Origin: Epithemia pelagica
Lineage: Eukaryota > Protista > Bacillariophyta
NCBI GenBank assembly: GCA_946965045.2
Contig: OX337232.1
Coordinates: 3,534,001-3,598,000, forward strand
Direction: 5' to 3'
DNA length: 64,000 nt
Shown here: positions 2,051 through 14,333 of the stretch, in pieces
Layout: the number at the start of each line of letters is the position of its first letter
Numbering within the stretch: position 1 is the first letter of the stretch
The notes under the pieces: model-generated
Databases searched by the model: none
What the model was told of the DNA's origin: nothing
What the model saw: only the letters and a program-made list of their open reading frames with translations
Program-made: the position numbers and the translations under genes

Positions 2051-3844
2051 ATGAACTTGTCTTCTATTGAGGGATATAAACTGGTTGAGCAGTTGGTCTC
2101 ATGCTTTCCCGACGCTCTTTTGAGAAAGGACCGTTATGGCGATTTGCCCATTCATCACGCTCTCCATATTAGACCGTACTGCTCACCTACTCCCGAGAAC
2201 AAAACCTACTGTCTTGTAACTTTTTTTATGCGAGAAGAACCACGGTGTGCTGCTATCCAGTCATACAAGTGTGGATGCACGATTCTGCATAGGGCCTGCC
2301 GAGAACATCCTAAGATGGTTTCAACGTATACCATGACACAACTGGCCCAAGGATGGCCCAATGGCATTGTTCAAAAAGATGGAAATGGATACACTCCCCT
2401 TCATAATCTTTGCCAAGTATCACAGCATCGGGACGATCTTATTGAGCTTTTCAACCTGTTTCATCAGCTCCAACCAAGCTGTCTGTCCATTCCTGACAAT
2501 GAAGGGCGTAGGCCCCTCGACATGCTCTGTGAAAACAAATCTCTCGGAAATTCTTACCAAGAGCAATTGGTCAAACTTGTCCTTTCTCTTGACCCTAAAG
2601 TCACAGAATTCGTTGATAACTGGGGCAATCTTCCTGTTCACAGAGCGTCTATTTCTTGTCCAAGTATTGCTGCTTTGCTGCTTGAAACGAGTCCGAAAAC
2701 ATTAGACCTATGGAACAGAGCATTCGGTGTTCCGCTGCACTCAGCTATCCGGTATGGTAAACCCCAGAACAACACAAAGGCCATTATTCGAATGATTCAA
2801 GCTCGTCCCGATCAAGCCAAATCCCCTGACGAAAGCAGGGAAAACAAGATACTTCCTCTTCACATTGCCTGTAAACACGGAATGGCCGAACTCATTCCAA
2901 CTTTGGTTGAGGCATATCCACAAGCTCTGTCATGGCAAGACTCCAATGGAGATACACCTTTCCATTGTGCCGCCCGAACGACCAAAAATCAAGAGGTTTT
3001 GACCTGTTTGAACAACCTTTATCCTCAAGGCTTTTTGTACAAGAACCGTGACGGCCAGCTGCCGATTGCGTGTTGCGGCAAGGATCACCAGCAATTTTTG
3101 CATTTGGTGCAACTTTGTCCTGCAAGCCTGTATCACGACTCCTCGACAGATAGTACATCGCTGAATCCAGGGAGTGCGTATTTGTCCGACAACCACAAAC
3201 TGTCGGACTCGGGAGCAGTACTACTCAATCGAGTCTTTGCGGCGACCATCCCAAAGCCCACAGATATGAAAAGCGAAAATAAGAAGCCCAAAGAAATGGA
3301 TGATTCAAAAGAGAAGGAATCATCATCATCATCATCCAATCACATCAATCAAGACCTAGAAAAGGACTCTGACGACACTCATGATAAAGAAGGGGAGGAA
3401 AAAGGATCAACTGCTGGCTCGACGACTAATGAGGCAGATTTGCTGGAAAACGAAATGTTTTCTCAACCATTGCTCGACAAGGCTATCGATAGATTGCAAA
3501 GGCTGTTGCAGGAAGCGGAGGAGATGAAGAGACATTTGGTTCAAGTGCAAACGACACAAGTAGCATTGGCGCAAAACACCAACAAGAACAAGTGCGAACA
3601 ACATGACGAGGGGCAGGCACAGGAAACGGACAACACGATGCTCACAGAGGAGGCCGACCTTCGCAACACAGGACGTACTAGTGTATCTTCCGTTGGTGCT
3701 ATGCAACGGTTAGACTCGAATGAACCCCAAGGTTCCAAAGAGTGCACGAACAAAGGCATCGATACTGCAGAGCACAAAGAACAACAACCAGGATCGAAAC
3801 GAAAACGTCCCCCGAGTAGTGAAACAGAGCAAGAATGCCACTAG
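2051..3844 (+). CDS. Ankyrin-repeat protein, subfamily D (D1), with acidic linker, short coiled coil and basic C-terminus
   Basis: 597 aa ORF with repeated ankyrin-like motifs (GDLPIHHA, GYTPLHNL, GNLPVHRA, ILPLHIAC, GDTPFHCA) and C-terminal SKRKRP. The homologous N-terminus continues upstream (ESLVK*FFEAYDVWDVEEARRILDENG) but is cut by TAG 1910-1912. Confidence 0.8.
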   Translation: MNLSSIEGYKLVEQLVSCFPDALLRKDRYGDLPIHHALHIRPYCSPTPENKTYCLVTFFMREEPRCAAIQSYKCGCTILHRACREHPKMVSTYTMTQLAQGWPNGIVQKDGNGYTPLHNLCQVSQHRDDLIELFNLFHQLQPSCLSIPDNEGRRPLDMLCENKSLGNSYQEQLVKLVLSLDPKVTEFVDNWGNLPVHRASISCPSIAALLLETSPKTLDLWNRAFGVPLHSAIRYGKPQNNTKAIIRMIQARPDQAKSPDESRENKILPLHIACKHGMAELIPTLVEAYPQALSWQDSNGDTPFHCAARTTKNQEVLTCLNNLYPQGFLYKNRDGQLPIACCGKDHQQFLHLVQLCPASLYHDSSTDSTSLNPGSAYLSDNHKLSDSGAVLLNRVFAATIPKPTDMKSENKKPKEMDDSKEKESSSSSSNHINQDLEKDSDDTHDKEGEEKGSTAGSTTNEADLLENEMFSQPLLDKAIDRLQRLLQEAEEMKRHLVQVQTTQVALAQNTNKNKCEQHDEGQAQETDNTMLTEEADLRNTGRTSVSSVGAMQRLDSNEPQGSKECTNKGIDTAEHKEQQPGSKRKRPPSSETEQECH

Positions 3845-3884: not shown

Positions 3885-4124
3885 TTTTTCGAGGCCTATG
3901 AGAACAAGGATTTGGACAAGGCACGACGAATCCTGAACGAGGACGGTGGTGCTGTCCTGGCCCATACCTTGGATTCCATCTTGCATCGATATCTCCTTCA
4001 TTGCGTTTTGGATCAAGACAAGGAGTTCTTGTCTAGCAAAAGGCTTATAAACTCAATTCCCGACTCATTCAGTTGTGTCCGAAAACGCTCTTGAAACGAG
4101 ATAGTTCTGATCGTTTGCCCCTTC
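3885..4124 (+). pseudogene. 5' fragment of a D-type ankyrin gene, truncated by the PGAM-kinase segment
   Basis: Close copy of about 8158-8397 (FEAYENKDLD..RILNE.GGAVLA.TLDS..HRYLLHCVLDQDKE). Similarity stops abruptly after ...tttgccccttc at 4124. Confidence 0.75.
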
Positions 4125-5661
4125 TCGGTTCCAACAATGTCCCTCTTGCTTTCCCTAACGCTAAAACAACGCCGAATGACTTGGAGTAATCACTGTCATC
4201 AGAGTCGTGCAACCCGTAAAGTTCGGAAGATAGAGCTGACCGTTTTTCATCATCCAACGGGCCTACAAAAGAAAGCGCCAATGTAATCTTGTCTTCGACT
4301 AGAGCCTCTTTTTGACCGTGGTGGTGCTCGCCGCCAAGAAAGTCTATCCAGAGAATATCGCCATCGCGGGTCTTGATGGCGTTGGGATACCTTGCATCTC
4401 CGTGATACCAGCCGCTATCATGCAACGCTCTGAGTGCGCAAAAAAGCTCGCGACAAGCCTCGCTGGTCTTGATCATAGTGCTCCCCACAGGTGTCATTGT
4501 ATACGCACAAAGAGGCCACTCAGCTTTCGCTTGTACTTCTACAACAGGGGCACCTTCATGTTTTGCGCTCTTCAATCTGCGATACTCCTTTGCGAATGAA
4601 GCGTGACCCGAGCGAGCAACCTTCAAAGCAACCATCTCGCCGTTCTCATTCTCGACGCAGAAAACTTCGCCGAAAGAGCCACCGCCCAAATACGCAGACG
4701 CGCCACCCGCAAGACTGGCGATCCGCAATCGCAGATCCACCATGGCATTCTGGGCGTTTACAACCTGTTGCGTCGTATGTTTTGTCATGTAGGCTTTCAA
4801 TACTGCTCTCGACCCTGGTGCATCCCATGGCACGAGATGATACAACGTGCGGATTACCCCATCGATAGAATCACCAACGACAAACCCATCCATGTCGTAC
4901 AAAATAATACTTAAACTGCGCCTCTTAACCCCCAAGCACTTCACGTAGTCGACCATCTCGCCAAGGGCCTGATGAAGATTTCCCAACTTTGATTTGCCCT
5001 CCCACAACGACGTAAGGTAGAGTTCCGAATCTCGTTTCATGTCCAAGCCGCCGAAGATCAAGCCCGAAATTTGGTGATTTGTTCGAAAACTCACCATAGC
5101 TTTACCTCCAAATGAAGTCGAAGGGGAGATCCGTAACGGGTGAGCGGTGAGCAAGTCAGGTTTCCTGCGGTTTTGAGCTGACTCAAGCGGATAGGCTGGA
5201 AGCCACTTTGTCGATTCTGTATTGCTCAAAACAAGTCCTGACTTTGTTTCTTCTTTCAACACTTCCGTAATTTTCGGGGACAAAAGAGCTGTCATCGCTG
5301 CTTCTACCAAATCAGGCTGTACCTCTCGAAGTGTTTGCCGTAGATCACACAGTTCAACGCTCGACAGTACCGACGACTCTTTGTTGGCGCCAACCATACC
5401 CGGAGGCTGTTGACTGTATTGGCCGCTAATGATCAATGCCTGTAGACATCTTGCGCCTCTTGTGGCCGCAGTTTGGGTCGGTTCGACGTTCTGTTGCTGG
5501 ATTAAGTCAGTTAAGTGTTGCGTGGCCTCAGTTAAGTAGCCCAACTGTTGTTGCGTGGCCTGGTTCTGTTGTAGCATGGCCTGGTATTGTTGCATCAACT
5601 GTTGTTGCATGGCCTGGTTTTGTTGCATCAACTGTTGTTGCATCAACTGTTGTTGCATCAT
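4069..5661 (-). CDS. Crinkler (CRN)-like PD-(D/E)XK nuclease + kinase module; could also start independently at ATG 5661
   Basis: Nuclease-like motifs [22 protein letters not shown] and ALGEMVDY. Kinase motifs [27 protein letters not shown] and WIDF. Confidence 0.7.
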
Positions 5662-6683
5662 CGTGGGAAGCTCCTCGACATGTAGAGAATTTGCGTTAGT
5701 GACAACCGGATTGGCCACCGCAACTTCTGCAGGAGGAGCAGCCGCATCGTCAGACGGTTCAGTATCGGAGACGGCCAGCTTCCTCAGCAGATCATGGGAG
5801 TTGTGGCCTCTGCGACTCTGCGTTTGGGCGGCAATGGGAGCGAAAGCTGGATGGAAGTTTTCGGTGATTTTGACACCCTCGATACGCGCTTTGATAGCAT
5901 CTTGATCACCCAAATAACGGCCCTTCAGGGGAGCAATAGCATTGGCTTGAGGGATTGGTTTGAGATTCTCGTCCAATTCATACACAAGAGGAGTCCCCGT
6001 TGGAATATTCAATTCGGCAATGGTGCCTTCATCGACGTCGTCCAAATGCTTGACAAGAGCTCGGAGTGAGTTCCCATGAGCAGCAATCAAGACAGTCTTG
6101 CCTTCCAAAATCTTGGGAGAAATTTCATTCTTCCACAGGGGAACAACCCGGTCCAAGGTTGTGGCCAACGATTCCGTCAAGTCATTGGCCGGGTGGTGTT
6201 CACTGGTTTTGTCAACGGGAGGTGGAGGAACATTATAAGCCACTGTGGGTTCCAATCCCTCTTTGGCAATCAACTGTCCCCCTTCAACCACCTCTTCGTG
6301 GCCCTTTGGCGACAAAGGACAATCATACCAACCAGTGAACTACGGAAACACAACGACGGACAGAGCAATATAAAAGTAAGAACAGAATTCCTTGATATCA
6401 TCCCCTTTATTACAACGAATCCTCCCTAAGATGAATGCTGAAGTTGTGAACACATGCCTTATTTTCAAGATTCCATGTCGATTCACCATGTCGAATGAGG
6501 ATCAGCGTGTGTTTTTCAGCAGTCTGGAACGTTGCCAAGCTGGAAGAAGATACCAAAAGTACCTGTGGTGAGATCTCACTTTCGCTGCAAGAAGAGGAAT
6601 TAAACCAAGGATTCCTCAACCTACCTTGGCAAGCTGCGTACACGAGACGCCAAGCGAAGAGAGGAACGGGAGATGGCAAACAT
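4069..6683 (-). CDS. Predicted chimeric gene of about 803 aa: presequence + internally deleted dPGM + polyQ linker + Crinkler-like restriction-endonuclease-fold domain + protein kinase
   Basis: Exons 6683-6625, 6539-6458 and 6339-4069 join in frame via a GT-AG intron (6624-6540) and a GC-AG intron (6457-6340). This gives [56 protein letters not shown]..., open to the stop at 4069. Confidence 0.55.
5520..5661 (-). repeat. Imperfect tandem repeat encoding QQQLMQQ units (polyQ-rich linker)
   Basis: Repeated caactgttgttgcat / ggcctggttctgttg units; translates as [29 protein letters not shown]. Confidence 0.85.
5869..6683 (-). pseudogene. PGAM: Cofactor-dependent phosphoglycerate mutase (gpmA/PGAM-type) copy with mitochondrial-type presequence and two in-frame internal deletions
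   Basis: Motifs [27 protein letters not shown] and [14 protein letters not shown] are present. The segment normally between VAY and (Y)xxPPP (the LxRA...LNERHYG region) is missing, as is a short stretch before TESL. No stop after ...IEGVK. Confidence 0.85.
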
Positions 6684-8146
6684 GGTGGTCGGTCAAATGA
6701 CAGCACCCCCGTCATGGGAAGCTTCCTACATCTCTCAGTACTGTTTTCAGTTTTGCTGACGTCACTGTAGCGATTAAAGTAGACGCATTAATCATCCTTA
6801 TCCGGAGCAATACGAAAAAAAACGAAAAACCCCCAACATTCTCTGGTGAAGTAGACTGGGTTTTTCTTTTTTTTTGTGGGACAACATAATATTATGGACC
6901 ATTTAATCATGAGATTATCTATAGATTTGAGTACAAAATTATATCCGCGACTGAAAAATGAGGGAAGATCCCAAAGATCTTGCGACCATGTCGGCACGGA
7001 GACGCACACTCCGGAACCAAACTTGCATCACCCATGATCTTCCACTCTCTCTCTCTCTCTCTGGTGTGATGGATGTAAGCTTTACACTGAGCAAGGACAA
7101 GCTGCTAATACTCCAGGAGACCCGCAAGGGACGAGCCAAGAAAGCCATGTGGAAGGTCTACGACGGCTTGCCTTGTCCCTGGGAGAAATGGAAGCGGCGT
7201 CAAAATTTTCCTTGTCGCATCATCGTCGACTTCCCGAGGCTATCTCCCAAGCACGGGAGCTCTTACAGGGAGGAGCTACCATGGTATGAGGGACGGCCAC
7301 CAAGTACACGTTACTGGGCTGAACGAACAAATCAAAATGACAGAAGACTTGATGAAAGGCTGTCAGTTTGTAGCGACAGGTTGTGTGTTGATTCATGAAC
7401 CATCTTTGGGATACAGTCGAGCCTTTCGACGGCACGTCAAACAAGCGAGTCGACCATTGTCGAAACCGTGATGCAATTAATGACTGCCTTTTTGGACGAC
7501 ACCCCGTCTGGTTCAAAATTCTCCCTCTCTCGAACGCATGTGGCCATAAGTACCATCAACATCAGCAAACCAGTCCTGGTCTGGGTGTATATCTTGGTTT
7601 ATTTTTGGATCCGAGTGGCGAAAAAGGGGAAACTATCATCACGCTCATCATGTTCGTCAACGCTCCAATCCAGTTCCAGTTCCTTCCTCATTGTCAGTTT
7701 CTGAACAACACAAGACGGGTTTATGAAATGAAGGTCTCTTACTTCAAAAACCGTTGAAAGCAGACAAATGCAGCGGAATGTCTGCTGAGCGATAAGAGTT
7801 TCATGTTCATTTCAGGCCCGCCAAGCAGAAACACGTCTCTTTAATTCACTCGTACTCCTTAATAATAGACCTATGGCCGCTACCCATCATGTAGAGAAAC
7901 TACTGCTCCTGAATACGGATACTGAACTCAGCCGTCCTATACCGCCTTGGCGGTTTCAATTAGGGAGCGTAAGGTAGTTCAAGTCATGCGTCGTTCATTC
8001 CCGCGCCGTTGGTCGCGCCGTTGGTCCGAACATGCGGGCTCGCGTTCAAAGATCGGGAGAAGAAAAACCTCCACAAAATTCAAACAAGGACAGGAAAATC
8101 ACACTGAGAAGAATCGCCGTTTGCCAATCTCCAATCTCGTAGTTTG

Positions 8147-8720
8147 TTCATCATGCTTTTCGAGGCCTATGAGAACAAGGATTTGGACCGGACACTACGA
8201 ATCCTGAACGAGGCCGGTGGTGCCGTCCTGGCCCAAACCTTGGATTCCACCATGCATCGATATCTCCTTCATTGCGTGTTGGATCAAGACAAGGAGTTGC
8301 TGTCTAGCAAAAAGGGTTATAAACTCATTTCCCTTCTCATCCAGTTGTGTCCAGAAGCGCTCTTGAAACGAGATGCTTCTGGTCGTTTGCCCCTTCACTA
8401 TGCCTTTTCGATTTCATTCTGTTCTTCTTCCCCTCTTCCTCCCAACAACAACAATAAAAAGGTCTTTTGTCTTGTCACGCTCATACTTCGTCATGCACCC
8501 GAGTGCGTGGGTGTCCCGTAAACGGGCCGCTTTGTATCGCACAGTTGCACCCATTTCGGTGTCGAAACCGCGGACCATCATTACCCCAAAGCAATCACCG
8601 CCTTTGCTGCCGTTGCAGCAAGTTTCATCGCCGTCCAGTCAACCATCCTTGCGCGTTGGTGAGTCCATCAAATCTCACGTCCTATCGGTATCTCAGATCA
8701 ACTTGCGTGAATTCTCGTAG
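8147..8720 (+). pseudogene. Degraded D-type ankyrin gene fragment
   Basis: ORF 8144..8521 aligns by eye to the D1 N-terminus (GYKLI..L.QLCPEALLKRD..GRLPLHYA...FCLVT), then breaks. It is followed by spacer sequence also seen near 23.5 kb and 30.1 kb. Confidence 0.7.
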
Positions 8721-9740: not shown

Positions 9741-11543
9741 TTAGTCTAACGAGACTCGCGCCCGTTTCACCCGTCGATTCTCTGGAGATTCATCCACAAC
9801 GACAGTCGACTGTGGATTCGGGTTGGCTGTTGTTGCTGTGCAACTATTGGACGGAAGTTTCACGTCCACCTTTTGTAGCTCAATATGGGTGTGCTTAATA
9901 AAGTCCGTTAAGGACGACCGAGAAGGATTCGGATTGGACAAGAAGCCTTGTACAAGGAACTCTTCCCTGGATTGTTCCTGGGAAGGCTTGTCACCATGAG
10001 ATTTGACAAGTTCGAGCCGTTTGTTCAGAAAGCTTGCAAGGGCTTTCAGAGCTTCGATTGGCAGTACGCTCAAATCGTCTTGGCCTGGAGTTTCAATGAT
10101 TGGGAGCATTGCCGCATCGAGTTTCTGTCCCTCTTTGATAATGTCTTGAACAAGCATGTCATTTCGAGTCTCTACATCTTTTAGCTTGTCAGTCAACTGT
10201 GCGTTCTCGTTCTGAACGGTCTTGAGCTTTTCGCCAGCACGTTTCAAATCTGCTTTCTCTTGCTTCAACTTTTCGTTCAAGCTTTTGTTGTCGATCGAGA
10301 GACTTTTCCAACTCTCCTCGAACTTTTCTTTTTCTCGCAAGGCGTCATCTCTTTCCCTCTTGAGTTTGGCTTCACCCTGCTCGTCCTTCCCAGAACCGCT
10401 AAGCGCTTTTTTCGTCAAGATGCATTGAAAGGCGTGATGAAACACCTGTCGCAGCAATTCCGTGCGGCGCTTGGGGAGATTGTGGTGACCAGACAAATAC
10501 TCAAGGACAGGACTGAGCAGCAGACTGTCTTGAATCTTTGTGTCATCAATATGAAACAAGCTCTCGGGGCACAATCGGGCCAGATGCAAAAACCTTTCAT
10601 CATCCTTGGGGCAACAATCTATGGGTAATTCACCGTCGTTGTTCTTTTGCAAAAAGGCTTCTGGATACTCTGAGTAGAGATACTGAAATGTGTCGGCATA
10701 GTCTTTTTCTTCGTTACTTGTGACCAAATGAGCAGGCAAGTTTCCATCATTGTCCATCACACGTACAGAATCTGGATACGCTTCTACCAAGGCCTTTATA
10801 ACGCGGGTCGGCTGGGTTTAACATGCATAATGAAGAGGTAGCATCTTCGTAGAGGATTCTTGCTTGGAAGCATGTTCGGGTCGGGCCTTGAGGAGGCACA
10901 ACACGGCATCTGGATTGGAACCATATATAGTTGTGCATGCGACATGCAACAAATACGTTCCATCATCGTCACAGATATCAATGGGTTCTTGGTATCGGTC
11001 CAAAAGCATCTCCACCAAATCTTGGTTTGCGCCCACCGCCACGTCGATTGGAAAATTTCCATTCTTGTCCCTTTGTCGAATTCCCTCTGGATACAACTCT
11101 AGCAACAAGGAAGCCACTTGCTTGCCCTCCTTTCCTAGAAATGGCTCGGCAGCTTGACGATGAATGGGAAGTTGCCCCTTACTGTTTGGTGTGGAAATGC
11201 ATTCCGGTAGTACTTTGTAAAAGAGCTCAACAAGGGTCTTGTCCCATTGGGCCCATTTGAAATGCAGGGGACGATTCCCACGAATGTCTTCTTTGAGGAG
11301 CACATCAGGATACAGGCTCAATATTTTGGAGACGAGCTTGTAGCCGTTGGGAAAGGGGAACGCGCGATAATTGAGGAGTTGATGGAGTGGGTATTGTCCA
11401 CTCGAGTGTCTGGCTTTGGCAAGGGCCACACCATGTTCGCCATTGAAGAGTTCCAGGAGCGCTTCCATTTTTTCTTCCTCCCAAAGCTTGGCATGAAGAG
11501 TTTTATGGAATGATTTGAGCAGGGAGTCTGTTGACGCGGTCAT
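9741..11543 (-). pseudogene. Ankyrin-coiled-coil gene A1 with one in-frame stop
   Basis: ATG in cccaccATGacc context at 11543 (MTASTDSLLK). ORFs 10818..11741 and 9741..10790 are the same frame, split only by TAA 10818-10820 (HYAC*TQP vs HYACKTQP in A2). Ends VDESPENRRVKRARVSLD. Confidence 0.85.
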
Positions 11544-12229
11544 GGTGGGTGACAAGAGGGGAAGTAGACAATGGCGCTCTGTTAGTTCTTTTGTGACGAT
11601 GATGAGAATGAGAGGGCATCGGCAATCGGCATCGGTGGGAATTGTCGGAGGGAAAAGTGGGAAGCGGCGCGCTCTCCAGAATCCACGCCTGCACATCACC
11701 GCTAGACCGAGCGGCAAGGTACCGCGTAAAAAGCGCGACAATGCGTGGTTGAAAGGTTCTCGTGACTGATCTACCTACCGAATGCATCCAAAGCTTGTTC
11801 GTCGGAAGAGAAAACATGGAGTATCAAACAATCAATCGAACTCGGCGAGAACGAATGTTTAACGACACACCGTAATGGTTCGATTCGAACATTTCAGACT
11901 TTGCTGTTGTACTCCAAAAAAGCCACCAGCCACTGCTCCTAGCTCGCCACATGGCTTAGAACAGGTCGGAGATTCACTTTGTTCTTGGGAGTACTCCTAC
12001 AAATGCTTCCTTTGGCCAGACGACGTCAAGGGTGAATCATCCGAAACGATATTCATCAACGAACTCCTAAGGCGTATGCTGTGCTGTCTTGTCGCTTTCC
12101 TTTGCTATTATCCATTCAAACTGAACGCGTACAGGCAGAGTCATTGAAAAGATAATATAAACACGACATGATATTCGTTTGTCCCATCGGAGTGTCTAAA
12201 GTCCCGTCATGTTTATGTGCATCGTTTCA

Positions 12230-14152
12230 CTAGTCCATGGAAACTCGAGCCCGTTTCGCACGTTGATTCTCTGGGGATTCATCGACAGTAACTGTTGACT
12301 GTGGATTCTGGTTGCCTGTTGTTGTGGTGCAACCATTGGACGGTAGTTTCACATCCATCTCCTGTAGCTCACGATAGGTGCACTTGATAAGGCTTGTCAG
12401 GGACGACCGAGAAAGATTTGGATTCGATAGGAAACCTTCCAAGAGCAGCTGTTGACTGGAGATTTCTGTTGAAGGTTTGCCACTACCATGAGATTTGACG
12501 AGTTCTTGTCGTCTATTCAAAAGGCTTGCAAGGGCTTTCAGAGCTTCCATCGGCAGTGTATTCGAGTCGTCCTGGCATGTTGGTTCAATGAATGGAAGCA
12601 GTGCCGCATACAATATCTGACCCTCCTTGATGAAGTCTTGAACTAACAAGCCATTTTGAGTCTGGAGAGATATTAGTTCTTGAGTCAACCGTGCCCTCTC
12701 GGTTTCAACCGTCGTGAGTTTTTCATCAGCACTCTTTGCGCCTGCTTCCTCTTTCTTCAACCTCTCTTTCAAGTTGCTGTTGTCAATCGAGAGACTTTTC
12801 CAGCGTTCCTCAAGATTTTCTGTTTTGCGCAAGGCTTCGTCTCTTTCCCTTTCTACATTTTTTAGCCTGTGAGACAATTTAACCCCCTCCTCCTCAAGCT
12901 TTTCTTTTTTGCACAAGGCTTCGTATCTCTCCTTTTCTATAACTGCTAGCTTGTGAGACAATGTAGCCCTGTCATCCTGCGTTTGTTTCTTCCTTTTTCC
13001 CAAGTTTCTGGTTTCAGACTTGAGTCTTTTGTTTTCTTCCTCAAGCTTATCTTTTTCATGCAAGGCTCCGTCTCTTTCCTTTTCTACATTTTTTAGCCTG
13101 TGAGTCAATTTAGCCCCCTCCTCCTCAAGCTTTTCTTTTTCGCGCAAGGCTCCGTCTCTTTCCTTTTCTACAACTTTTAGCAATTCCGCACTGTCGTCCT
13201 GAGTTTGTTTATTTCTCTTTTTCAAGTTTGTGGTTTCAGTCTCAAGCCTTTTGTTTTCTTCCTCAAGCTTTTCTTTTTCGCGCAAGGCTTCGTCTCTTTC
13301 CCTCTTGAGTTTGTTCTTAATCTCCTCGTCCTTACAAGAACCTTCATGTGCTTTCTCGGCCAAGAGGCATTGAAAGACCTCGTGAAATACTTTTCGTAGC
13401 ATATTCACGCGGCACCTCGCGAGATTTCGTTTGACCAAAAAGTCTAGAACAGGATTGAGCAGCACACTGCTATGGATGTTCCTTTCATTTATGTGAAATA
13501 AACTTTTCGGGCACAATTTGGCCAAATGCAAAAACCGGTCATCGTCCTTGGCGCAGCAATCAATGGGCATCTCACCATTTTTGTTCTTGTGCATAAAGGC
13601 TTCAGGGTACTTTGTGTGCAGATACTCCAAGTTGTAGTATCCTTTATTGCCAGCGGCAAAATGAGCCGGTAAGTTCCCGGCGGCATCCATGATGCGGAGG
13701 GCATCTGGATAAACTTCAACCAAGGCCTTTATCACCTTGTCCGGCTGCGTTTTGCATGCATAATGAAGAGGTAGCATCTTGGTGGAGGCTTCTTGCTTGA
13801 AAGCATGTTCGGGTCGAGCCTTGAGGAGGCACAACACAGCATCGGGATTGCAACCACTGTCTTTGACTTTGGTTGCACATGCGAGATGCAATGCATACCT
13901 ACCACCTTTATCGCACGTATCAATGGCTGCGGGAAACAGGCTCAATAACTTGGAAATAAGTTTGTATGCTTTTGAGAAGAAGAAGGCATCATGCGTGACT
14001 ATTCGATGCAGGGGGTACTGTCCAAGCGAGTCTTTGGTTTTGGCAATGGCTTTACCATGCTTCCCATTGAGGAGTTCCAAGAGCTCTTCGTCACGTCCCA
14101 AACGAAGAGCTTTGTCGAATGCTTTGATCTGGGACTCTGTTGATGCGGTCAT
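12230..14152 (-). CDS. Ankyrin-coiled-coil protein A2 (intact, 640 aa)
   Basis: Start MTASTESQIK at 14152. Ankyrin motifs QYPLHRI, RYALHLAC, MLPLHYAC and NLPAHFAA; about six ERD(E/G)ALxEKEKLEEE coiled-coil repeats; C-terminal FLSNPNLSRSSL...KRARVSMD. Confidence 0.88.
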   Translation of the reverse strand: MTASTESQIKAFDKALRLGRDEELLELLNGKHGKAIAKTKDSLGQYPLHRIVTHDAFFFSKAYKLISKLLSLFPAAIDTCDKGGRYALHLACATKVKDSGCNPDAVLCLLKARPEHAFKQEASTKMLPLHYACKTQPDKVIKALVEVYPDALRIMDAAGNLPAHFAAGNKGYYNLEYLHTKYPEAFMHKNKNGEMPIDCCAKDDDRFLHLAKLCPKSLFHINERNIHSSVLLNPVLDFLVKRNLARCRVNMLRKVFHEVFQCLLAEKAHEGSCKDEEIKNKLKRERDEALREKEKLEEENKRLETETTNLKKRNKQTQDDSAELLKVVEKERDGALREKEKLEEEGAKLTHRLKNVEKERDGALHEKDKLEEENKRLKSETRNLGKRKKQTQDDRATLSHKLAVIEKERYEALCKKEKLEEEGVKLSHRLKNVERERDEALRKTENLEERWKSLSIDNSNLKERLKKEEAGAKSADEKLTTVETERARLTQELISLQTQNGLLVQDFIKEGQILYAALLPFIEPTCQDDSNTLPMEALKALASLLNRRQELVKSHGSGKPSTEISSQQLLLEGFLSNPNLSRSSLTSLIKCTYRELQEMDVKLPSNGCTTTTGNQNPQSTVTVDESPENQRAKRARVSMD

Positions 14153-14333
14153 GGTGGGAGACGAAAGGGGAAGTAGACTCTCTTGATTTCGAACTACCTT
14201 GGAGTTTATCTGGCACCGCGGTATCAACAGCAGGGGGATGAAATAAAATATCCCTCGATCTTACTTTTTCTCTCACTGACCCCGACGCCAGGGTTGCACC
14301 GCATCCATCACGATCGTAGGGTAGGTCTTGGGA

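Follow-up and report, generated by a model that had tools for sequence, protein, structure and literature searches.

A young chimeric gene of Epithemia pelagica probably joins a truncated phosphoglycerate mutase to a Crinkler-like nuclease-kinase

The stretch of DNA analysed here, referred to below as the window, comprises 64,000 nucleotides of the diatom Epithemia pelagica (contig OX337232.1, positions 3,534,001 to 3,598,000). On its minus strand (window nt 4069–6683) it carries a gene in which most of a glycolytic enzyme, phosphoglycerate mutase (PGAM), continues in frame into a nuclease-fold domain and a protein kinase. The gene is best explained as a young, lineage-specific chimera, assembled from three donors at the DNA level, that likely produces a single protein of ~803 residues, a reading to which a probability of about 0.58 is given; the length is arithmetic only, and the exons were searched and analysed separately. 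The first donor would have been the 5' end of a mitochondrial-type gene for cofactor-dependent PGAM (dPGM), which supplied a short leader, the ATG, a presequence, the two introns and almost all of the coding sequence. The second would have been a full copy of a Crinkler (CR)-type gene for a restriction-endonuclease (REase) fold and a kinase, together with its leader, and the third a fragment of an ankyrin gene that supplied a short antisense tail. The predicted product starts with the PGAM presequence, has a dead PGAM body in the position of the variable header, and passes through a Q-rich linker into an intact-looking nuclease and kinase. A new chimera of this kind had been proposed in a first-pass annotation of the same DNA, and its PGAM and nuclease-kinase donors have now both been identified in the same assembly.

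Strand reading and a script check place the start of the gene at an ATG at nt 6683, followed by two short introns and an exon of 756 codons with its stop at 4069–4071; the program-made listing of open reading frames (ORFs) gives 748 codons for this frame (4069–6315). In the direction of transcription its parts are:

6684–6729, minus strand: upstream leader copied from the parental PGAM locus L001, where homology to the parent ends (gapped alignment to L001 ~5545–5610)
6625–6683, minus strand: exon 1, with the ATG and a presequence-like peptide, 19 codons plus 2 nt (97% identity to the parent; N-terminus conserved in the transcript-derived P0020)
6540–6624, minus strand: intron 1, 85 nt, GT-AG (5 of 85 positions differ from the parent)
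6458–6539, minus strand: exon 2, completing the presequence and carrying the dPGM catalytic-histidine motif RHGES (LILIRHGES; His_Phos_1 profile positions 1–18)
6340–6457, minus strand: intron 2, 118 nt, GC-AG (donor GC at 6457–6456; GT in the parent and outgroups)
4072–6339, minus strand: exon 3, 756 codons, followed by the stop at 4071–4069 (strand reading and script)
5868–6339, minus strand: PGAM-derived part of exon 3, with two in-frame deletions, ending 4 codons before the parental stop (alignment to the parent)
5838–5867, minus strand: junction filler, 30 nt, matching neither donor (donor alignments)
5779–5837, minus strand: sequence that was the leader of the nuclease-kinase gene and is now part of the reading frame (alignment to L002)
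5485–5778, minus strand: low-complexity linker, a Q/M-rich tandem repeat (first in-frame ATG of exon 3 at 5661)
4702–5484, minus strand: predicted domain of restriction-endonuclease PD-(D/E)xK fold (E 5217–5215; KPD 5163–5155; EGK 5001–4993)
4127–4701, minus strand: atypical protein-kinase domain (G-loop 4692–4663; ALK lysine ~4623; HGD..N 4404–4381; IDF 4347–4339)
4069–4126, minus strand: C-terminal tail and stop, antisense of an ankyrin-gene fragment (homology to the paralogue ends at 4127)

The splice sites listed coincide exactly with the limits of conservation against the parental PGAM gene and two outgroup loci, and two transcript-derived homologues, P0020 and P0014, read SRVKSLAAFQTADKHTL and FTGWYDC across the joins. 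Intron 1 offers two in-frame acceptors, of which the conserved one is the distal (...CTTCTTCCAG/C at 6540); the first AG was rejected, since the sequence is conserved in the outgroups and in P0020 only from the distal site onward. The coordinates given earlier for an in-frame structure of three exons with a presequence-like start are correct. The loss of the PGAM stop after IEGVK was likewise borne out, as homology ends at 5868 and the frame remains open through the Q/M-rich repeat, the nuclease-fold domain and the kinase. Within the linker, a repeat at 5542–5663 is built of 33-nt and 21-nt units and is expanded by 24 + 7 residues relative to the closest paralogue, P0002. The anatomy stands as it was first described; that description did not cover a 33-nt deletion, the GC donor, the lost ATG of the paralogue, the antisense-ankyrin tail, or the purifying selection on the PGAM part, all of which are treated below.

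The parental PGAM, which the first-pass annotation had left to be located, was recovered by a word search as an intact dPGM (P0015, 89% identical, L001:6001–6660). It lies on contig ctg1348l of ENA assembly ERZ21939226, the same contig as the fusion and about 776 kb away from it. This locus is syntenic with two loci in a related assembly (L004 and L005), with a WD40 gene upstream in each; since L001 has the same neighbours as L004 and L005, it represents the ancestral locus and the window copy is the derived one. Homology between the two copies spans ~6729 to 5868 of the window, and the derived copy keeps the parental ATG, the presequence and both introns, with 96–97% identity over what remains. 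Relative to the parent it has suffered two in-frame deletions. The larger, of 189 nt or 63 codons, has removed the stretch TSLLQRAIR...LNERHYG...WRRSY (junction 6234/6233) and corresponds to residues 64–124 of PDB 5vve, while the smaller, of 33 nt or 11 codons, lies near 6180. The last 4 parental codons and the stop are also absent, and with them the C-terminal KNQTK tail.

Besides a sub-threshold Pkinase match, Pfam finds only His_Phos_1, in two pieces (profile positions 1–18 and 112–183). Of the features that mark members of that family, the N-terminal RHG phosphohistidine motif is present in exon 2 and the second catalytic-histidine motif (AAHGN) is kept at 6084–6055, while the KNQTK tail and the enzyme's own stop are missing and the central dPGM segment (TS..R, LNERHYG, WRRSY) is absent. 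In dPGM structures this segment carries the substrate-binding arginines and the catalytic glutamate. Judged from its codons, the PGAM remnant is catalytically dead, as had been claimed earlier: with 63 + 11 codons missing relative to the parent, the central segment and the stop lost, and the frame running on into another gene, an active mutase is impossible. Among the closest known counterparts is the mitochondria-targeted stramenopile isoform of PGAM1/dPGM, which shares with the window copy the N-terminal extension, the two introns and both histidine motifs (RHG and AAHGN), and from which the latter differs by its lack of 63 + 11 internal residues, of the KNQTK tail and of the stop.

Of the 19 residues encoded by exon 1, 4 are Arg and 5 are Ser, and neither Asp nor Glu occurs. 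In composition and placement this peptide resembles a mitochondrial presequence, being rich in Arg, Ser, Ala and Leu, non-acidic, and positioned ahead of the mature enzyme, and, on reading, the N-terminal sequence lacks the hydrophobic core that marks a signal peptide of the diatom plastid type. The presequence-like start of the earlier annotation is in fact the conserved extension of this PGAM lineage, since it is kept in the parent, the outgroups and the complete, transcript-derived P0020. Diatoms are known to possess a mitochondria-targeted PGAM1 (PMC11371179), and N-terminal extensions of PGMs from Phaeodactylum tricornutum carry GFP into mitochondria (PMC6198282). An identical N-terminus was not found among the P. 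tricornutum PGMs in the supplementary sequences of the latter study, so the window peptide is tied to demonstrated import by class only. The fusion protein would be imported into mitochondria through this presequence. On the parental lineage a single non-synonymous change has occurred, a Pro to Leu replacement within the presequence (L001 ~5640), the window copy having kept the ancestral Pro.

The nuclease-kinase half has its closest paralogue, P0002 (L002:6001–7572), on another contig of the same assembly, with 88% nucleotide and 86% amino-acid identity; further paralogues are P0004, also of this assembly, and P0003, from a metagenome. Homology to L002 begins at window nt 5837, i.e. 140 nt upstream of the P0002 ATG, and this stretch is open in frame, interrupted by a gap of 72 nt relative to L002 that keeps the frame. 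The position of the P0002 ATG itself reads CTG in the window (5778–5776). At the other end, homology stops at 4127, 8 nt before the P0002 stop, and the last ~19 codons and the stop of the chimera are provided by the antisense strand of an ankyrin-gene fragment. A 16-nt inverted match to the kinase coding region was considered as the source of the 30-nt filler and rejected as chance, about 6 such matches being expected in 7 kb by our own estimate.

Pfam returned nothing for the nuclease domain or for the headers of the family, and because the domain was left unassigned, a large profile search was used. This gave 84 representatives at E <= 1e-3, mostly 450–600 residues long and with a kinase after the query domain, one of them a Nitzschia inconspicua protein labelled kinase-domain-containing. 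An AF2 model built on an alignment of 11 sequences reached a pLDDT of only 37, and one built on 64 sequences a pLDDT of 91.3. The structural neighbours of the latter found by VIA-align are headed by DrdV (Z 9.9) and BpuSI (9.2), followed by NucC, SgrAI, Cfr10I, NgoMIV and Bse634I at Z 7–8. HsdR and Hjc are among the structural neighbours too. Most of the 50 VIA-align rows are nucleases of the REase fold, and Foldseek agrees; Z values of 7–10 are only moderate, and it is the consistency of the list, together with the motif, that carries the assignment. The E...PD...(D/E)xK signature is strongly conserved in the 64 family sequences (E90 in 63, K108-P109-D110 in 61–62, E/D162 in 59, K164 in 62), and the window copy retains it intact as SNTE, KPD and EGK. 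According to the model, the middle domain is a restriction-endonuclease fold with an intact catalytic signature. Among the paralogues, a catalytic residue of the nuclease has been lost in P0002 (KPN), P0004 (WKGK) and P0006 (WQGK), all of which keep their kinase motifs; the window copy is complete in both.

For the kinase, a profile of this family matches YabT and TTK at 5e-5 to 1e-4, and the motif positions align to MAP4K1 as well. Across 52 family sequences, conservation is complete or at least 90% at the G-loop, the Lys, the alpha-C Glu, HGD..N and IDF. All of these occur in the window copy, in which the last reads WIDF. The window protein scores 14.4 bits against Pfam Pkinase, below the cut-off of 31.7, while two distant relatives, P0142 and P0152, pass it with 37.2 and 38.6 bits. 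Since the domain is short after the DFG-like motif, it is regarded as an atypical kinase. The C-terminal pairing of an REase-like fold with a kinase that had been proposed from the letters of the window is therefore supported by a confident model, by its structural neighbours and by conserved motifs in both domains.

An REase domain and a kinase behind a variable header form a common C-terminal architecture of CR proteins in the account of Zhang et al. 2016, as related in PMC5289972; the studied example is CRN8 of Phytophthora. The window gene has this C-terminal module, and shares with such CR proteins the order of header, linker, REase fold and kinase, the multicopy state and the swapping of headers. 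It differs in that its header consists of a mitochondrial-type presequence and a truncated glycolytic enzyme, not of a Ubl or alpha-helical domain. Neither LxLFLAK nor HVLVxxP occurs in the window gene, and where a CR header (PF20147) would stand there is PGAM-derived sequence. The host also differs, Epithemia being a free-living diatom and not a pathogen; CR/Crinkler proteins do occur in free-living eukaryotes (PMC12957317). Matches of the nuclease model in the ESM Atlas include, at TM 0.62, a kinase-containing cluster rich in oomycetes and, at TM 0.53, an oomycete Crinkler-N cluster with PF20147 in 91% of its members, and a search by protein features returned the same oomycete kinase-containing cluster. 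None of the family members found bears the name Crinkler in the sources, where the label of the Nitzschia protein is the single informative one, and the likeness to these clusters is at the level of structure and features only. 'Crinkler-like' is a fair name for the module, the likeness being one of architecture, structure and protein features.

The earlier statement on CR/CRN proteins, that variable N-terminal headers are joined to REase and kinase domains, also holds for this family. The N-termini are unrelated to one another (a coiled coil in P0011, others in P0003, P0010 and P0012), and one appears to be of Crinkler type. Directly upstream of P0004 lies an ORF (L007:3324–3665, contig ctg1230l) that by protein features resembles Crinkler-N with a score of 0.93, with 28 of 30 matches in the PF20147 set; Pfam gave no match for it. 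This ORF ends in ...PLIVVAP, after which a tandem duplication of ~50 residues and a change of frame precede the nuclease body (L007:3324–3995), so that an intron between header and body is probable. Paralogue P0004 thus appears to carry a Crinkler-type header where the window gene has PGAM.

The age of the arrangement can be gauged from four neutral divergences, namely those of the PGAM introns (14 of 203 positions, 6.9%), of PGAM synonymous sites (8.3%), of the nuclease-kinase half (dS 7.4%) and of a 240-nt repeat that flanks the gene (~10%). As these are similar, one complex founding rearrangement is the simplest reading. Since both PGAM introns were included, the copy must have been made from DNA or from unspliced RNA. 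The copied segments start 66–140 nt upstream of the ATGs of their donors (5837, for L002 5861; 6729, for L001 ~5545), where a transcription start would be expected. These positions hint at an RNA-templated origin by template switching, against which the retained PGAM introns speak.

Between parent and copy, the PGAM codons show 12 synonymous changes and 3 non-synonymous ones (pN/pS 0.078). Polarisation with the outgroups assigns at most 2 of the non-synonymous changes to the window lineage, one of them at a deletion edge, where an unconstrained copy would have 16–19 (Poisson P ~1e-5 to 1e-6); a conservative test confined to outgroup-polarised changes gives P = 0.03. Such a low ratio beside an intron divergence of ~7% indicates that the codons have been translated and constrained for most of their time at this locus, and the pattern of substitutions argues for amino-acid-level constraint on the PGAM remnant. 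A PGAM duplicate that stayed intact until very recently, and only then broke, would likewise leave a low pN/pS. This is less likely, since it needs 3–4 independent lesions that each kept the frame, with almost no accompanying substitutions.

Of 99 alignment columns in which the other family members are invariant, the nuclease-kinase half departs from them in a single one, and all of its catalytic residues are kept. Against P0002 its dN/dS is 1.06. On the window lineage there are 23 non-synonymous to 10 synonymous changes (ratio ~0.7), which is indistinguishable from neutrality. In neutral simulations its frame stays open in 16% of runs. These values fit a conserved core with a rapidly evolving surface, as in families involved in conflicts, without being decisive.

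These last figures weigh against a single maintained protein, as do several other points. The donor of intron 2 has changed from GT to GC on the window lineage, with a further G to T change at +6, and if the intron is left unspliced the frame from the ATG at 6683 stops at 6412–6410, after which the first usable ATG is that at 5661. GC-AG introns are processed by the major spliceosome. With 74 core residues gone, the PGAM part may be unable to fold, and the open frame is in part an effect of ascertainment, since readers flag long ORFs. In a collection of 5.8 billion sequences, from genomes and metagenomes, no other protein with this fusion was found. Upstream of the ATG, alignment to the parent breaks off after ~46 nt in the window and 66 nt in the parent, with nothing alignable beyond 6729. 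As the parental intergenic region is ~330 bp, no more than a leader or core element can have been copied, and the housekeeping promoter that had been supposed to drive the gene is not supported. Transcription would presumably start from a promoter supplied by the new locus, where the gap to the divergent ORF at 6958 measures ~230 bp.

The same observations could be read to mean that a decaying PGAM pseudogene lies in the 5' leader of a header-less nuclease-kinase, which would be translated from the ATG at 5661 (MMQQQ), the upstream open frame being a by-product of young age. The mutated donor of intron 2 suits this explanation, as does a promoter that was not copied, and two large deletions with loss of the catalytic core resemble the death of a gene; moreover, the called ORF of P0002 begins only ~40 codons upstream of the conserved MM, and the ATG at 5661 is the first in frame in exon 3. 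It is nonetheless considered rather unlikely. A leader under no constraint should not show a pN/pS of 0.08 and at most two non-synonymous changes on its lineage beside introns that have diverged by 7%, and three indels as well as the junction all keep the frame, which for two deletions and the junction has a chance of ~1/27, lower still with 30 stop-free linker codons. Three to four lesions with almost no substitutions are better suited to one founding event than to slow decay, and in any transcript starting upstream the ATG at 6683 would open a long upstream ORF.

That the whole is a mosaic without function or expression, produced when a repeat-rich region underwent a complex rearrangement, with both halves drifting, is quite improbable. 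The mixture of at least three donors with filler and an antisense tail would be expected of such a mosaic, and it agrees with the dN/dS of ~1 in the nuclease-kinase half, with the 16% of neutral simulations that keep the frame, and with the restriction of the fusion to one assembly. It is opposed by the constraint on the PGAM codons and by the single change among 99 family-invariant residues in spite of ~23–40 amino-acid changes on the lineage, and also by the retention of every catalytic residue of nuclease and kinase where P0002, P0004 and P0006 have each lost one. An artefact of assembly joining PGAM and nuclease-kinase reads, suggested by the occurrence of the sequence in one contig of one assembly only, is highly improbable. 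The PGAM half differs by ~4% and two deletions from the only PGAM locus found, and the nuclease-kinase half by 12% from its nearest paralogue, so neither can have been built from reads of the donor loci; in addition, the junction holds 30 nt of unique filler and the contig is 1.49 Mb long.

If the gene is indeed a translated chimera, expression would involve transcription from the promoter of the new locus, GC-AG splicing of intron 2, and import of the product into mitochondria by way of the presequence, where the nuclease would act, with the kinase as its regulator, as has been proposed for CR proteins. A stronger version, in which a Crinkler-type nuclease-kinase has been re-addressed from its usual route, which depends on the header, to the cell's own mitochondrion by the PGAM presequence and a dead, selectively maintained PGAM body, is thought unlikely. 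The remnant might then dock onto resident glycolytic enzymes or be a regulatory decoy, and the nuclease might act on mitochondrial nucleic acids, for instance as a suicide or defence effector or as part of a selfish element. That genes can gain mitochondrial presequences through recombination or exon shuffling is mentioned, from earlier literature, in PMC6198282. With other young chimeric genes that arose by partial duplication the window gene shares the DNA-level copy of a housekeeping gene fused in frame, donors that are extant, and a presequence acquired with captured 5' exons. It differs from them in that the recipient is a toxin-like nuclease-kinase, and in that the body of the captured enzyme has been retained and constrained with its core deleted.

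The birth of this gene is legible step by step, which is rare: the donors are extant, the breakpoints can be placed to the base, and four independent estimates of age agree. It would illustrate a route by which headers are exchanged in Crinkler-type proteins, with a fragment of a housekeeping enzyme bringing an organelle address. The apparent constraint on a gutted piece of an enzyme is unexpected and points to a non-catalytic role. Should the product reach the mitochondria, this would be the first case of a CR-type nuclease-kinase directed to an organelle of the cell that makes it, and would bear on the role of CR families in free-living eukaryotes.

The chimera is flanked by two copies of a direct repeat derived from an ankyrin-family gene:

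3886–4124, plus strand: left copy of the 240-nt direct repeat, from the N-terminal part of an ankyrin-family gene, its frame shifted by the loss of 1 nt
8157–8396, plus strand: right copy of the 240-nt repeat, 90% identical, inside an intact ORF (8144–8521)

The two copies enclose a segment of 4.03 kb that contains the whole chimera, in the manner of a very long target duplication, and it is the left one that supplies the antisense tail. A search around the gene for terminal inverted repeats, which would be expected of a transposon cassette, gave nothing but the 240-nt direct repeat. The segment 6730–8156 (~1.4 kb) that separates the chimera from the right copy has plus-strand ORFs at 6958–7398 and 7395–7757 and matches neither a Pfam family nor any of the loci fetched. 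Within it, in the putative promoter region (6815–6875), lies a near-perfect inverted repeat of 18 nt, whose arms, one A-rich and one T-rich, are separated by 25 nt. The chimera is surrounded by related genes with ankyrin repeats, some of which have a long coiled-coil tail, at 2051–3844 (plus strand) and at 9741–10790, 10818–11741 and 12230–14227 (all minus strand), and this cluster places the locus inside a gene-family array.

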